From Zygophlyctis sp. KS116 (Eukaryota > Fungi > Chytridiomycota), in contig BAAFSQ010000245.1 in NCBI GenBank assembly GCA_054661495.1, positions 1-14,667 of the forward strand: a stretch of 14,667 bases of DNA, in the 5' to 3' direction. This document shows positions 4,829-14,667 of this stretch, piece by piece. The first letter of the stretch is position 1; each line of letters begins with the position of its first letter. Under the pieces are notes generated by a model. It worked only from the letters and a program-made list of their open reading frames with translations. It was not told the origin of the DNA and did no database searches. The position numbers and the translations under genes are program-made.

Positions 4829-6410
4829 TCATATCGAGTCTTTTATTTGAACCAGTAGTATAATGTTAAATATTGATAGTAAAAGTGCAACTAAAACCAA
4901 TATTATTGTCATGATCCACGAGTTTGCAAATGATACATCTTCTGTTTCGTTAACTGAACTTGAATCCTGAGTTTCAGAGTCTATTGTACTGCTAGCTACT
5001 TTAAAACATTTGAGTGCCATAAATTTATTCGTAGATGTGAACTGAACCAAGGGCCAGACTGCAAAAGGGAGCTGTAAAGACAAGACGACTTGGGTAAACA
5101 CAAGCAATTTCCCAAGTCCTATATTTCCAGAAGTTAGAGCGATAGCTAATGCTGGAACAATGGCAATTGTTCTTGTGACCATCCGTCGAACCCAAGGAGA
5201 CAAACTGATCGAGTCACCTAAAAAGCCAGACATTACATATTGACCTAAGATTCAGTCATGATTCAATATTACCTGCTAATGTTCCTGTTATCGTTGAGCT
5301 CTGACCTGAACATAACAATCCGATTCCAAAAAGAATACCAGCTCCTTTTCCAAGAGTATTTGTTAAAATGTCATACGCTTGATGTAAATCCCCCACCTCT
5401 CCATTTCCAGATAATGCAGACGCAGAAACAATAAGAATAGATGCATTTACAATTAGTGCCAAACAAAGTGCAAGAGTTGAATCAGCATAAGAAAATTGTA
5501 ATATACGATCCATTGTATCCTTTTTTACAGGATTTTTTTCCTCTTTCTCTTCATTTACATCGAATATATCTCCTAGATTATCTTCATCGCCACATTTTCT
5601 ATATTTGACAATGCTTGAGTGAAGATAAAGGTTATGGGGCATCTTTAAATTTAATAATTATATCTTACGACTGTTGCACCTATAATCCCCATCGCCACAT
5701 ATAATTTCTTAGGATCCGTAAATATTGATACCTGTGGCAAAAATCCAATAAAAACTTCATTCCAATTTGGATTAGATTTTCCAACCACTATTAGCAAACA
5801 AATCCCAACAGTCAATATTAGCAATCCGATTCCTCGTTCAAACCATCGTAGGTTTTTTGCGTTCCATCCCAACAGTATAATAAATACATCAACCCCAGTA
5901 ATTACAACTCCCCATTCGATCGGGATTTTGAAAAGAAGATTTAATGCAACTGCAGACCCAATCACTTCGGCAATATCGCACGCTATGATTGCTATTTCAC
6001 AAAGAATATACAAGAAAAATGAGAAGTATTTGTTGTAGTGCTCTCTGCAGCTCTGAGCCAGATCTAGACCTGAAACTACTCCTAGTTTAACACACGAACG
6101 TTGCAGCAAAACTGCCATTAAATTGGATAAGAGAATAATAAACAACAAATCATAACCAAACTAGCGTTATTATACTATCATGTACCAAGCTCCCAGCCGA
6201 TAAGTCAGTAGCCCAGTTACCTGGGTCCAGATAACCTACAGCTACCATGTAACCTGGACCCATGAATTTTCCAAATGTTCTCAACCATGATAATGCAGAA
6301 TTTATTTGAACGTTTTTAGTATGTCCACTATTTGACTTTAATGTATCTTGTTCAGATGATGTAGGAGTTGAATTCCCACTATTGATTTCTAAATCAATCG
6401 CTTTCGCCAT
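4829..6410 (-). CDS. SMF1: Nramp/SMF-family divalent metal (Mn/Fe) transporter (500 aa, 4 exons)
   Basis: Exons 6410-6186, 6160-5669, 5642-5273 and 5244-4829, with introns at 6185-6161 (25 nt), 5668-5643 (26 nt) and 5272-5245 (28 nt). Motifs: GPGYMVAVGYLDPGNWATD, GATVMPHNLYLHS, GQSSTITGTLAGQYVMSGFL and QVVLSLQLPFA. The exact SMF paralogue cannot be resolved. Confidence 0.93.
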
Positions 6411-6434
6411 TTAAATTAAATTAAAATGATAACG

Positions 6435-7608
6435 TCACTTTAAAATCATTGGCAAAATACTGTCCATGACTTGCAATCCCTTTGATGTTGGTACCAGTCG
6501 ATTTCCATTGGTTCTATGATCAAAGAAACCATCCTTGACTAATTCATTGATTCTTTCAATATCCAAAATATGATTAGCATTTTCAAGAGGTATTCCTTCC
6601 AATGTCCGAAGACCTAATACAACAATTTCCTTTGATAGAGTCTTTGAATCAATAATTTGACTCCTTTTGATTCCATGATTAACCATTTTAATTTCTCTCA
6701 TCCACTGTTTAGGCTCTAGAATTCTAAACGTTTTAATTATGGATGAATCTGATAAAGTAAATCTTCCATGAGCTCCGGGACCGATTCCAATATAATCTAA
6801 TCCCCTCCAATATCCTAAATTATGTTTAGACTTGTATTTATCAGAAACAGTAAATGTCGAAACTTCATACTGCTGATATCCCATGTTTGCACAATTCTAT
6901 AATCTAAACTTTTTGTAAAAATACCTTTATAGTGTCTTCATACATTGTAGCAGAATCACATTCATTAGGTACTTGTAATCCACTATTGAAAAATTTAGTA
7001 CCTCTCTCAATCATCAATTGATATAGCGTCAAATGTGGCACTTTAAGTCGTAAAATATCAAGTAATTCTAACCGCCATTCAGCAGGAGTCTGATTATGTC
7101 TACAATAGATAAAATCTAGGCTAATATTATCAAAGAGAGATTGAGCAATTTTTAAAGATTTTAGAGCAGTTTCGACTGTATGATCTCTATTAAACTCCTT
7201 GAGCGTGCTATTTTGCAGAGACTGAAAACCCATACTAAGCCTATTTATACCAGCTTCTTTAAATGCTTTTAATGCATCAAACGTCAAGTTTGAATTCGGA
7301 TTTACTTCTAATGTTACTTCTGTTTGATCAGTCTTGTACTCTTTGAGCTGATCTAATACTTTTGATATCAAAACAGGACGGGCTAAAGATGGAGTCCCAC
7401 CTCCAAAGTATACACTATTAAGTATTCTAGATGTTCCAAGATTTAATCGGTTGAGATCAAAGGATAAATCAGCAATCATTGATGATTCCATCCGATCATG
7501 CTGCATTCCTCCTTCTGGGATTAGATATTTGTTGAATGCACAGTATGAACATTTTGTGGAGCAGTATGGCCAATGGACATAAACTGAAAACTTGAGTCTT
7601 GTCATCAT
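6435..7608 (-). CDS. RSAD1: Radical SAM heme chaperone HemW / RSAD1 (HemN-like family, 381 aa, 2 exons)
   Basis: Exons 7608-6925 and 6896-6435, with a 28-nt intron at 6924-6897. Motifs: YVHWPYCSTKCSYC (CX3CX2C), YFGGGTPS, EVTLEVNP, GINRLSMGFQS, YEVS, the HemW-type HNxxYW (HNLGYW) and YIGIGPGAHG. Confidence 0.9.
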
Positions 7609-9070: not shown

Positions 9071-12000
9071 TCAAGGAAACAGTTCTGGTCTTGCTCTATT
9101 ATCTGAAAATAGAGCCAGAGTAATCATCTCAACTCCCCAAGCGAGTCCAAAGTCTAGTACCATTGTTGTAAGTAACTTTGTACGAAACTAATCGTTAAAG
9201 AAGAAATCTTACTTCATCTTTAAAAGGTACGAGCTGAAGAGATTCATTCAAAGAAGGAAATGACTCAGAAGCAGCTGAAAATGCAATTAGAGATACAATG
9301 GCCAAACTGTTAAAAAGAGACTTGTTCTGAAATAGAGATTCTCGAAATGGTAGACCCTGTAATTTTTAGTGAGATTAGAGTACCTGATAATTGATTGCAA
9401 AAGTAGAAACCTGCATAACAAGCGAAACAAGATACATTGCGCTGTTAAGTAAGTTTGGCACGAATTCTGCATCCGGTAGAATCTCGACCTCCTCTTCTTC
9501 ATTAAAGATCATAACTTGCTGTCTTATATAGAACATGGCAGCCACATGAACAGCAGCCTGCCCCAATACTGACAAGATAATATAAAGATTAAAAATATTT
9601 GGCTGGGGTCTCTTCTTTGATAGCTTTTCGACAGCCTATATGGTAAAATCAATAGACTTACGCTAGATTTTGCGATTCCAAAAAAACAAATTGTTAAAAG
9701 AAATCCTGCGATGGTCGCCTGCCAATCTCCCTGTTTAACACCTGCTAAATGAAGTACGCTCAGTGAGTAGGCGCTGATTAAAGAATTTAAAGCCAATATC
9801 TTATACATTTGAATCATTGCCACTAAAGTAGATCTTCCTTGACGGGCAATATTAACAACTAAATTTATGATTGGGAAGCGCAATACCTGAAGTGACACTC
9901 GATACCTTTGAAGTAAAAGGCGCCGCCACTGAAGCATCACCAAACTTAATAACAGGAACTTCATCTTCCATTTCTCCCATTAATTGAGTCATAGTATCCT
10001 GAGTCTAAATTATATATTTTACTTACCTGTAACTGGGCAGGCGGCTAAATATTTATTCAATTTCTCACTTACATTATTAGCAGCTTGACCGGGAGTCGGA
10101 GGGAGTCCCCATGATTTACGCATCTGCTCCTGCTTTTCTAGTAGCTTTTTTCTATGTCTTTCTCTTAATCGTACTGCAAGTTTCTCCAATTCTTCTTGAT
10201 TTCCGTCCAGCAATGCAACACCTAACATTTAAATAGTATTTATACCAATATGGCTTTGTTTAAGAGCCCCTACATCATTTGTGCCATCCCCCGCCATCAA
10301 TGTAATATACCCAGCTAATTTAAGCTGCGTCAAAATCATTTCTTTCTGCGAAGGAGAGGTTCTAGCATAAATCCAAATTCTCGGCAATAATTTTGAAAAT
10401 AGTTTTGACCCTTCCAACAGTGAAAGTGCATTACCAGTAACACAAAGGTCGTATGAGAAAATCTTTTCGTCAATATTTTCACTAGAGGGATCCATTTTAA
10501 TCCTAACAGACTCGTCAATCGACCACCATTCTAGTCCTAATGAAATTATATAGTGATCTATACCTTCATTTTCACGAGTATCACCAATCAAGATGTTTCT
10601 GGTGGATATTTCAACTTCTTTTGCAACATGGCAAGCTGTTAAAGCATTATCCCCAGTAATCATCACAACTCTATGAGATGAGTAATTGAGGCTTTTGACA
10701 GCTGACTTTGCGTCCGGTTTCAAAGGGCAGAAAAACACCAAAAATCCAGCAAACTCCAACTCCGATTCCACCTCACTACGATGAAGGTCTTTTATCTATT
10801 GTAAGATTTAATATAAAAACTACTACTTTTGTGGCTGAAACATTCAAATACTTGAAACCAAGAGCTAAGACTCGCTTTCCTTTACGTGCCCAATTTTTAT
10901 AATCTTCTTCATAACCTTGCGGTACTTTGGAAAGCATTCCTTGAATTGTTTCAGGAGCCCCTTTAACAGCAACAAGTAGTTTGTTTGAATCTGATACAGA
11001 AGAAATAGTTGACATTCTTTTTAGTTGAGAAGAAAACTGAAATCGTCGGATTATCTTGAGCTTATCCGAAGATTTTTTAGATTTTGAGACAACTACATCA
11101 GATGAAGATAGAGTCCAATCTATAGATTCTAAAGTGTTTTTTTCCATAGGATCGCCAATTATGCCATCATCCAGCAGAGCAAGGGCATGCGCAGCGGCTA
11201 ATACTCGACATGTCTCTTTTGGAACAGACTTGATATTATGTAGCACATCAGAAGGATGAGTTCCACTGAGACCAGCAACACCTTCAACGATTAGATTTTC
11301 TGCTGTTAGAGTTCCCGTTTTATCAAAACATGCCACATCTATTCGACCAGCAAAAGGAATTCTAAACGGCTCTGTACAAAAGATGTACATTTTTGATAAT
11401 GCAACAAGGGAGTTGTTGACTGCCAATGATAATTCCATAGGAAGTTCTGGGGGAACTACAGACGTGATGATCAAAATACAATGAAGTAAAAGTTTAGACT
11501 GACTTCTTTCATCATCTTTAGAGCCTTCAGTCCATACATACCATGACGCAATAACTGCGAAAAACAACAGAAATAGAATAAAGAGCAGGGCTTCCAAATT
11601 ATTCGCAGTAACACGTTCAGTAGAGTATATAATAGTTCTCACAAGTTTTCCTTGTTCAGTTGAGAATCCAGTTCTTATGACAACCGTTAATGCACCTCCA
11701 TCTGGAGTCACAATTTTCCCACTTCCTTGCGTAACTTGTAAAACCTTTGTCCCACCAAAAACTACATGCCCCTTGTCTGATTCCATATTAAAAGTTTCAT
11801 CGGGCTCTCTTATATCAATAGACTCTTTCAACTGTGGCGTTGATTCTCCAGACAACATTGCTTCATTTGCTATACACGAACCATCAAGAAGCAAAAGATC
11901 AGCAGGAACTGGAGCCTCATCTTTACATCTAACAAGAGAAAGTAAATCTAAAGGCAATAACTTATCAGTACTAAATTCCTGCCATTTCCCATCTCTAAAA

Positions 12001-12779
12001 ACATTTACCATATAAGGTTTAATAGACATACTTCTAAATTCCTGCAAGTTTTTCAATCTCTAATTATATTTAGAAAAATTATTCTTTATACCTGCACAAC
12101 CACTGTAGCTTCAAATACCATGAGCATAAAAAGCGTAAAAAGAGAATAATACCACATTTCATCCAAAAACCATAAAGCAACACAAAACAGTTGAAAAATA
12201 AAAAAAGGCGCAACCAAATGCTCTTTAAATAGTTCCATAAAACTAGGAATAGGAATATCAAATCTATTTTAATCAAGAATTTCTATAATACCTGTTATAA
12301 CCATATTTACCCCTCGCCCTTCTCAGCTCTGATTCACCCTTTAACCCATCCAACTCTTTAAATTCCATAAACTTTGTAGGAGTATCTCCTGGATAGTCTA
12401 TCCCTTTAAAGTCTTTTGTATCTTCATCCCAAATATACTTTTTCTTTTGAAATACAAAAAATATTCCCTCTTTAGACTTGTTTAATAGTACAAGTTCCGC
12501 TGATCCTTGATGCGGTCCGGGAACAACAAGAACATGAGTTCCCTCATTAATCCCAGATGCATGTCTACAACTGTACCAGGCCTTTATTTTAACAGACCAG
12601 ATTGTGGATAGGTACATCAACCCCTGTAATCCCATCAGAAGCAAGAACGACAGTCCTGCAAACTCTCTCTCCATAGAATTCAGGAAATACAACCAAGTTG
12701 ATAAGAAAATTACAGAAACACTTGAGAAAAAGTACGAATTTGATCGTTTTACCAAGAGCTTATAATTGAATAATGACAT
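9071..12779 (-). CDS. SPF1: P5A-type ATPase, ER transmembrane-helix dislocase SPF1/ATP13A1 (about 1136 aa, 12 exons)
   Basis: Exons: 12779-12292, 12263-12092, 12059-10827, 10795-10564, 10536-10246, 10221-10073, 10044-10027, 10004-9887, 9858-9662, 9635-9384, 9356-9213 and 9187-9071 (3411 nt, open throughout). Motifs: [21 protein letters not shown]5A-type PPELPMEL, phosphorylation site [26 protein letters not shown] and [12 protein letters not shown]. Confidence 0.95.
10027..10044 (-). other. 18-nt phase-0 microexon (PPAQLQ) in SPF1
   Basis: Flanked by an acceptor (...tatttag, 10045) and a GTAAGT donor (10026). The upstream intron also starts GTAAGT (10072). Confidence 0.7.
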
Positions 12780-13089
12780 TTCTAGATTCTATAATGAATA
12801 AGAAAATTAAAGTAATTACTTGTAATCGTTTATTTACTGGAACTTTAATATGCGTAGACTATCTCGGGAATCTACTATTGCAGTCGGCAACTGGTATTTT
12901 TTGTCACCTTTTCCTAACACTTTAGAACTTGTTGCAGCTGCTCCATCATTAATTAAGGATTCCAGTCAACATTCTAAATCAATCAATAATCAAGATCGAT
13001 GGATTGGCTTGATTATGATTCCAGGGGATCGTTGGACACGAGTATTTCTAGTCTCCGATGATGCATACGTCATTCCAAATGAATTTTAA
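12773..13089 (+). CDS. NAA38: Sm/LSm-domain protein, most like NatC auxiliary subunit NAA38/LSMD1/Mak31 (87-94 aa, 2 exons)
   Basis: ATG at 12773 (or 12794). Exon 1 ends at 12893, a 32-nt intron with a CTAAC branch site spans 12894-12925, and exon 2 is 12926-13089. Protein: [41 protein letters not shown] (Sm1: R.F.G.L...D..GN.LL...E) ... DRWIGLIMIPGDRWTRVFLV (Sm2: R.IGL.MIPG). Confidence 0.8.
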
Positions 13090-14667
13090 AAGAGCAGAGG
13101 TGGGGGATGTGCCCAAAATACTCAAATTAGCTCCTTCATTATCAGTAGAGGAACTTTCAAAGATTATGTAATAATTAATTTTTTTTGATTTTAGTGAGAA
13201 AAGTCCAGTGGCAGTGATTGGATCAAGTCAAGATGAATCAGAAATTTATGGTCTTTTAGTACTTGATAATGATCCAAAAAATTCAAATTTAAATCAGGAT
13301 TGTGATGATTGGGAAGATTGGATCAATGATGAATATGATGTAAATATGAATGTAAAATCTTGTTTTTAACTGGTTAGTTGGAAAATACGCTTTTTCTTTC
13401 AGTTTTCATTGGTCATCCAGATTATAATATTCAAGTTTTAGACTCTATACTAACATATGTTTTTGAATGGTTACCTATGCTTACATATATTGGATATTTA
13501 GTGAACAGTTCATACACTGTAGGTTCTCCAATCTCTGATTTTAAATTACCAAAAGATGTGGATAAATCAGACAATAAAAAGACAAAGGCTTTAAAAACAA
13601 AATATTTTAATCAGATTTTATCAAAAGGGACAAGGCCGTCATTATGGTTAAGTTTAAGAAAGGATTTTACAAAAACTTTCAAGATTAGAAAGTCTAGAGT
13701 AGAAGATTGTGATGATATATCTCCAATGCTCTTAAAGCAAAATAGTGTATTGTTTTAAAAAAATTAAAAATGTAGCAATTATCACAGAAAAAGATGGAAT
13801 ATTTTCTCTCTCAATTACTTGAAACTCATTCAGATGTCACAAAAACTCTTGTAGCAGAGGTATTTTCTATTCTTTAAAGTAATAGTGTGGCGGGAAAGTT
13901 GTTGGATTCATGAGTTTTTCACTTGATCCGTCTGTAGATCAACTTGATGAAACATTTGATTTAGATGAATATGATGGTCTAAGGAAAGGTATTACTTTTA
14001 TATTTATCACAAGAGGATTCTTCTTTGGATGCATTTTGCATAAATTTATTCTGTATTGAAAATGGTTTAGCGAATATGGCATATGAATTAGTCAAGGCAG
14101 CGTATCTTATACTTCCAGAATATAACTATTGCATATTGACGGTATCTCCAACTGTTCAAGAGCATCCACTATGGAAAAACTTTACATTGGTTTCTCCAAG
14201 ACCTGGGAAACACTCGTCTTGTGTCCTTTATGTCAATAATAGGTTTTCCGCTAGAGTTTCGGTTCGATATGCAGTGATCAGTGAATTGGATCAAGTAAAA
14301 AGATTTTTGGATGCCTCAAGTCAGTCGATGGATATTTATAACGAATTTCAGAGAGGTTTAAACTTTACGGATGATATTTTGGCACAAAAACCATTCATAA
14401 TGGAGAATTCCGGTCAGATAATCGGAGTGGCTACTTTAGGAAAGTGCATTAATTCAAGTCAAGTGGTTGATCAGTTTGATGTTGCAAAATTTATAAATAT
14501 TCCAAGAGACGGGTTTGACGGTAAATATCTATACCTTTGCAATTTCATCATTAATCCCCTTTTCGAAGCACAGTCCAGGGCTGTATTTCGTGTAAGTGAA
14601 TTATTGCAACTAATTGATCTAGAAAATTATGCAAGTGGCGAAAGTAGACTGCCTAATTCATTCTTTT
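13079..14667 (+). CDS. CFAP61: Cilia- and flagella-associated protein 61, 5' portion (runs off the window)
   Basis: In-frame ATGs at 13058, 13061 and 13079. Introns at 13168-13194, 13352-13377, 13747-13775, 13860-13885, 13989-14013 and 14592-14622. The spliced frame is open and gives WEDWI...LENTLFLSVFIG, IRKSRVEDCDD, YFLSQLLE...LVAECGGKVVGFMS, FDLDEYDGLRK, DAFCINLFCIE, NYCILTV and NFIINPLF, matching the recalled CFAP61 N-terminal domain. Confidence 0.82.

Follow-up and report, generated by a model that had tools for sequence, protein, structure and literature searches.

Bidirectional promoters serve head-to-head gene pairs in eukaryotes. The known cases closest to the locus described here are overlapping genes of strongly compacted genomes. 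In Encephalitozoon cuniculi, 129 annotated head-to-head or head-to-tail overlaps between coding sequences (CDSs) were reduced to 9 by start correction, and at the remaining ones the signals lie inside adjacent CDSs and leaders are shorter than 7 nt (PMC2803860). Microsporidian transcripts often start in upstream genes (PMC3629993). In Giardia muris, 441 genes (9.5%) overlap their neighbours, by 21 bp on average, and the median intergenic distance is 37 bp (PMC7641422). Sanchytrid genomes measure 10-11 Mb (PMC8371127), similar in size to the 12.7-Mb assembly used in this study.

Here we analysed a 14,667-nt stretch of DNA (the window) from Zygophlyctis sp. KS116, in which the P5A-ATPase gene SPF1 and a gene of the LSm family start head to head. 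The results showed that their overlap is real, conserved and rare in its own genome, and that it is an extreme of known compaction and no new mechanism. A sequence-only reading of the window had called the arrangement very unusual, which was overstated, since the whole genome is compacted and precedents exist in E. cuniculi and G. muris. Our literature search, conducted largely without subscription journals, found no report on gene overlap in chytrid-like fungi and no confirmation of a human NAA38/CYB5D1 overlap.

Start codons of SPF1 and the LSm gene interlock

Re-reading of the sequence confirmed the reported geometry. SPF1, on the minus strand, starts at CAT 12777-12779, with an in-frame TAG (12791-12789) four codons upstream, and the first in-frame ATG of the LSm gene lies at 12773-75 on the plus strand, just after an in-frame TGA at 12767-69. 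The two CDSs overlap by 7 nt with interlocked start codons, while use of the second in-frame LSm ATG at 12794 would leave a gap of 14 bp to SPF1 (Table 1). Two conserved genes on opposite strands thus have overlapping first in-frame AUGs; these AUGs are conserved, and the residues that follow them are under protein-level selection. The -3 position was a purine at both ATGs in all sequences.

At 4/130 predicted starts, the first 12 nt contained an antisense ATG followed by an open frame of 39 codons or more, and the overlap pattern in one genome alone is weak evidence; its weight comes from the relatives. No AUG-bearing upstream exon model was found for SPF1 or LSm in the window, and the idea that either gene has a conserved coding exon further upstream was rejected, since none exists in the window and the models of the relatives are inconsistent. 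Two lake metatranscriptomes yielded five short RNA contigs, none overlapping 12767-12800. No Rfam family exceeded its gathering score, no meaningful repeats or palindromes were found, and sigma-70 scans stayed at chance level.

Table 1. Features at and around the SPF1/LSm junction, in window positions
Feature	Position	Strand	Basis or detail
SPF1 first coding exon	12292..12779	-	Pfam, structure matches, orthologues; gene extends to about 9071
Shared heptamer ATG-A-CAT	12773..12779	both	LSm ATG 12773-75 (+), SPF1 ATG 12779-77 (-)
LSm/NAA38-like exon 1 (N-terminal helix, Sm1 motif)	12773..12893	+	Pfam, orthologues
Candidate SPF1 5'-UTR intron, antisense to LSm codons 4-16	12782..12819	-	Splice scores
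Second in-frame LSm ATG (Met8), alternative start, conserved	12794..12796	+	
Putative LSm intron, 32 nt, C-rich	12894..12925	+	Frame and orthologues
LSm exon 2 (Sm2 motif GLIMIPG, stop TAA 13087-89)	12926..13089	+	
Synonymous-frozen block in last LSm codons; candidate CFAP61 promoter	13036..13072	+	TCCGA 13054-58, ACGTCA 13067-72
CFAP61 exon 1	13079..13167	+	RNA contig, conserved start, PF16092 downstream

Identity of the two genes

SPF1 exon 1 matched Pfam PF23143 (E 1.2e-6, from residue 16) and yeast/fungal P5A-ATPase structures (E 1e-12). The gene combines the 2TM hairpin PF23143 with an E1-E2 ATPase core, an N-terminal hairpin and core that it has in common with Spf1/ATP13A1, and its protein starts about 5-15 residues later than SPF1 of other fungi. 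The SPF1 introns 9357-9383 and 9636-9661 were spliced out in RNA contigs. Profile and structure searches were run exon by exon or on unspliced ORFs, and joined models entered the gap statistics only.

LSm exon 1 matched PF01423 weakly (E 0.0015, profile positions 2-40, starting at residue 3), and the F-L-x-S-I ahead of Met8, kept with synonymous changes, aligned to the N-terminal helix region of the Sm fold. The assembly holds 15 other LSm-family loci, which we assign from their sequences to SmB, D1, D2, D3, E, F, G and LSm1-8. These account for all seven Sm proteins and all eight LSm proteins of the rings, so that the present gene, with an Sm-like domain outside that set, is likely NAA38 (LSMD1/Mak31) by elimination. 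The direct match to that name was weak: an exon-1 profile run against the PDB found yeast Naa38 as its best match at E 0.18, with LSm8 close at 0.39. The name NAA38 proposed by the sequence-only reading is thus likely, on elimination together with this weak match. The LSm protein shares with NAA38/Mak31/LSMD1, the NatC auxiliary subunit, an Sm-like domain of about 95 aa, but it is divergent from NAA38. Its Atlas annotation gave the LSM domain only, AlphaFold on the single sequence was uninformative (pLDDT 35), and the CG density of the gene was unexceptional (82nd percentile).

The junction is conserved in relatives

We compared the junction with five relatives that span it: L017 (96% protein identity), L018 (75%), and L019, L020 and L021 (62-66%); L022 and L043 duplicate L021. 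These junctions come from independent ENA, JGI and Logan assemblies, and a search of JGI metagenomes by DNA pattern and by protein gave no matches. The gene order from FAM210 to CDC50 and the junction itself were retained in five independent assemblies, so a collapsed assembly, which had been named as a possible source of the overlap, is excluded. Across lineages, LSm proteins shared 70% identity, their codons showed synonymous changes, and the frame was intact in the window, L001, L019, L020 and L021. An assembly artefact, or an LSm ORF that is a dead gene, would fit the metagenomic origin of the assembly, the TGA at LSm codon 17 in L017 (about 30 nt from an N gap) and the lack of LSm RNA among the five short RNA contigs. 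The same junction and gene order in assemblies from all three sources and the conserved protein and frame argue against it, and this explanation, to which we give hardly any credence, appears already largely refuted.

The heptamer read ATGACAT in the window, L017, L019 and L021/L022/L043, ATGTCAT in L020 and ATGAAAT in L018. The changed middle base in L020 preserved the geometry: SPF1 and LSm have swapped Thr2 and Ser2 there, and both ATGs are intact. SPF1 residue 3 was Leu, Ser or Phe, and the T that forms the LSm ATG was always retained. In total, the LSm ATG was present in 6/6 sequences and the SPF1 ATG in 5/6, so that the orthologues support the earlier view that both starts are genuine. 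The exception is L018, which has ATT in place of SPF1 Met1 (L018:35-37) with the N-terminal region still conserved; this codon is 35 nt away from the contig end, coverage of the contig is 0.24, and the ATT is a sequencing error or a non-AUG start.

Downstream of the SPF1 start, YKLLVK (codons 6-11) was kept in all six sequences, and residues 6-35 were conserved at the protein level, both with synonymous changes. Together with the conserved F-L-x-S-I of LSm, the YKLLVK motif indicates that translation starts upstream of both. The conservation statistics are modest, because the relatives represent only about four independent lineages and some 40% of synonymous codons stay unchanged in any case.

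These data bear on the possibility that no true CDS overlap exists and the interlock is an annotation artefact, with LSm translated from Met8 (14-bp gap) or SPF1 from Met36 or a non-AUG codon. We consider this improbable. Start correction removed 120 of the 129 annotated E. cuniculi overlaps, all three other overlaps predicted in our genome sample were wrong starts, Met8 is conserved, and L018 carries ATT at SPF1 Met1. However, protein-level conservation with synonymous changes covers LSm residues 3-7 and SPF1 residues 6-35, a start at Met8 would leave little of the N-terminal helix region of the Sm fold, and a start at Met36 would lose the first part of the PF23143 hairpin. Moreover, the first LSm ATG persisted in every sequence despite changes in the SPF1 residues that encode it.

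The overlap is the tail of general genome compaction

The host is a flagellated fungus-like organism (CFAP61 is present) that was found in lake metatranscriptomes, and its metagenome assembly consists of 1175 contigs. Genome statistics were obtained from a 262-kb sample, about 2% of the assembly, with a home-made, strand-separate gene finder. This program recovered eight other hand-annotated genes of the window and three RNA-verified introns (26-27 nt); it missed LSm and truncated SPF1. The sample was about 91% genic, with 1.9 kb per gene and very short intergenic spaces throughout. Median gaps were 162 nt between divergent genes (n=31), 87 nt between tandem genes (n=67) and 39 nt between convergent genes (n=33, six overlapping). 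Seven divergent pairs, about a quarter of the sampled head-to-head pairs, were separated by 23-53 nt, and 14/67 tandem gaps measured at most 30 nt. The three other divergent overlaps predicted in the sample were start mis-calls, and no second verified head-to-head overlap was found among about 30 pairs. A spacing of -7 nt is rarer than roughly 1 in 30, yet continuous with the gap distribution. These findings indicate that the SPF1/LSm overlap is the tail of general genome compaction.

The motifs CGCGT, CGACG, TGACGT/ACGTCA, TCCGA/GTCTGA and AACCCT were enriched upstream of sampled starts, with a peak at -50..0, which suggests short leaders throughout the genome. Head-to-head gaps of 23-37 nt contained promoter-like motifs. 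The -3 position showed a purine bias, with A at 75 and G at 20 of the 131 predicted starts. The sampled upstream motifs included CGCGT/TCGCG (MCB/SCB-like), TGACGT (CRE-like), AACCCT/GCCCTA (telobox-like) and GTC[CT]GA. In the window and sample, introns peaked at 24-29 nt, and the donor +3 position was A in 94% of predictions.

Several further observations concern gene spacing. In the window, FAM210 and dynactin p62 are convergent with a 9-nt gap (1213-1223), and the tandem gap from HemN to NRAMP is 24 nt (6410-6435), compared with 18 nt in L043. An ADP-ribosylglycohydrolase gene (PF03747; 7766-8920, at most one predicted intron) lies between HemN and SPF1 in the window and in L017. It is absent from the otherwise syntenic L021/L043, where 34 nt separate the HemN start from the SPF1 stop, and appears to be a lineage-specific gain or loss. 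At L039:8820-9380 (G000 C3, about 49162-49170), a small membrane-protein-like ORF and a downstream gene form a putative 9-nt head-to-head overlap; the true start of the downstream gene may be a later Met, and no Pfam match was found there. At L025:7872-8555 (G000 C1, about 28106-28117), an intronless 149-aa ORF with hydrophobic ends and no Pfam match would share 12 nt with its divergent neighbour and overlap the first ATG of the downstream gene by 8 nt.

The 3' end of the LSm gene overlaps CFAP61

The LSm gene is overlapped by neighbours at both ends, as the CFAP61 ATG (13079-81) sits within the last 11 nt of the LSm CDS on the same strand. The CFAP61 start, M-x-F-K/R-R-A-E, was kept in L001, L017, L019, L020 and L021, and an RNA contig (13114-13298, without the intron 13168-13194) joined the upstream exon to CFAP61. 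Two other models of this region were set aside. An over-calling gene model fused LSm to CFAP61 across an intron at 13069-13099; this was rejected, as it removes the conserved F-K-R-A-E. A CFAP61 start at ATG 13061 is unlikely, its frame being broken in L020 and L021. In L001 (385-616), unrelated coding sequence follows CFAP61 exon 1 and its intron, reflecting a chimeric contig, an extra exon or a rearrangement.

Within the last LSm codons, 8/9 synonymous-capable codons were invariant among the window, L020 and L021, against 0.40 in the SPF1 background (P 0.0035 for a block picked post hoc; the best nine-codon background window reached at most 7). The block includes TCCGA and ACGTCA, 6-23 nt 5' of the CFAP61 ATG, which were present in all six sequences covering it and were both enriched within 100 nt upstream of the starts of sampled genes. 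This frozen TCCGA/ACGTCA block is the best candidate evidence of a promoter embedded in coding sequence.

The close spacing of the two genes raises the question of an operon-like organisation, with LSm and CFAP61 on one mRNA under translational coupling and the head-to-head interlock as a selected device for co-regulation. The distance from LSm stop to CFAP61 start is short in the relatives (-11, 0, +7 or +15 nt), and tandem gaps of at most 30 nt are frequent in the sample, as given above. We regard such an organisation as very improbable, since the LSm-CFAP61 distance is not fixed, and the promoter-type motifs frozen just upstream of CFAP61 point to a promoter of its own. The RNA contig begins at 13114 and is uninformative on the 5' end. 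In addition, the three proteins, an ER dislocase (SPF1), a probable NatC subunit (LSm) and a flagellar protein (CFAP61), are not known to act in a common pathway.

Candidate leader and promoter signals of SPF1

The sequence-only reading had placed the promoter and 5' UTR of each gene inside the other's coding sequence, unless the mRNAs are nearly leaderless. Because the SPF1 and LSm CDSs overlap, the promoter and leader of either gene have no room outside its neighbour, and to this extent the claim holds; signs of embedded cis-elements were also found. In the window, none of the enriched promoter 5-mers came closer than 100 nt to the junction, and no marked element for an LSm promoter was found inside SPF1.

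Upstream of SPF1, splice scoring suggested a candidate 5'-UTR intron with its donor at 12819 (-40 from the ATG) and its acceptor at 12789 (-9; 31 nt) or 12782 (-2; 38 nt). The score was 9.7 in the window, 8.0 in L020 and 7.5-7.9 in L019/L021 (38-nt form), compared with a median of 8.8 for true introns and with values of at least 9.5 in 0.2% of random antisense 50-nt windows. The donor position was identical in the four sequences tested, and the candidate intron encloses an AUG that L018, L019 and L021 carry at -16, out of frame with SPF1. The signal may be a by-product, as conserved Thr and Ser codons of LSm supply its GT and AG, and we judge the case for a real 5'-UTR intron to be about evenly balanced. 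The putative LSm intron on the opposite strand is unusually rich in C, with a fraction of 0.22-0.27 in six sequences. The median of 478 predicted introns was 0.07, and the LSm values exceeded their 99th percentile, which makes the LSm intron a candidate site of SPF1 promoter elements.

The same region could be read without such signals. Both ATGs would be real and the mRNAs nearly leaderless (below about 15 nt), as in Encephalitozoon, with transcripts overlapping by 10-30 nt only; the intron-like stretch would be incidental, as would the C-rich intron. Consistent with this, head-to-head gaps of 23-37 nt that contain promoter-like motifs leave little space for leaders, the motif peak lies within 50 nt of the ATGs, the AUG at -16 is out of frame with SPF1, and E. 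cuniculi 5' UTRs are shorter than 7 nt (PMC2803860). However, the -3 purine bias (95/131 starts), absent from E. cuniculi, and the candidate intron ahead of SPF1, conserved and with high scores, speak against it, and the microsporidian near-leaderless signature was lacking, with no CCC beside either ATG. We therefore consider this reading unlikely, while granting it more weight than a mis-called start.

Taken further, the candidate signals may point to a triple use of the 317-bp LSm gene, as protein-coding sequence, as the site of both neighbours' promoters and as the antisense SPF1 leader with a spliced UTR intron. The SPF1 promoter would then lie in or near the C-rich LSm intron and the CFAP61 promoter in the last LSm codons. 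We put this forward tentatively, as a possibility that we would not presume to be correct.

Discussion

We believe, with somewhat better than even confidence, that both ATGs are the true starts of two ordinary genes, each transcribed on its own, that became interlocked by compaction, with promoters in the neighbours and short leaders. Genome-wide compaction would have removed the spacer until the first codons of SPF1 and LSm interlocked. The interlocked spacing would then have been locked, because indels or most substitutions in the 7 nt presumably harm one gene, and could persist without any special function. The SPF1 and LSm promoters would each lie inside the neighbouring gene, and the mRNAs would have short capped leaders, tens of nucleotides long and complementary to the 5' coding region of the neighbour, from which normal scanning would allow translation of both. 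The LSm gene, presumably expressed, is the likely platform: SPF1 probably initiates within LSm exon 1 or the LSm intron, its leader may splice out the 31/38-nt 5'-UTR intron, and transcription of CFAP61 is probably initiated from motifs in the final codons of LSm.

The locus is a head-to-head coding overlap of two conserved eukaryotic genes with cross-species support, whereas most such claims dissolve on start correction. It also presents an intron-rich flagellated fungus compacted to the level of Giardia and microsporidia, apparently by shifting cis-elements into neighbouring CDSs. The overlap implies no new molecular machine; it offers a system for testing the minimum spacer and leader tolerated by RNA polymerase II and scanning ribosomes, and for testing transcriptional interference between overlapping 5' ends. 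For annotation, it means that gene callers that forbid overlaps drop the small gene and truncate its neighbour. If the triple use of the LSm gene were true, the placing of promoters inside neighbouring genes would be the rule in a zoosporic fungal lineage rich in introns, beyond the reduced microsporidia.

Compared with bidirectional-promoter pairs, the locus likewise has divergent genes with coinciding regulatory regions, and many pairs in this genome are spaced at 23-165 nt. In contrast to such pairs, SPF1 and LSm have no intergenic DNA between them, so no spacer promoter is possible. The extreme compaction, with signals possible in the adjacent CDS, resembles that of E. cuniculi and Antonospora locustae, in which head-to-head gaps are about 35 bp and transcripts initiate in neighbours (PMC2803860, PMC3629993). 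Unlike E. cuniculi, which shows no nucleotide bias upstream of the AUG and nearly lacks introns, the present host is a flagellated fungus of 12.7 Mb that is rich in introns, has a -3 purine bias and carries an overlap conserved across species. The G. muris genome is comparable in size and density (PMC7641422); Giardia, however, is almost intron-free and unrelated to the intron-rich host described here.
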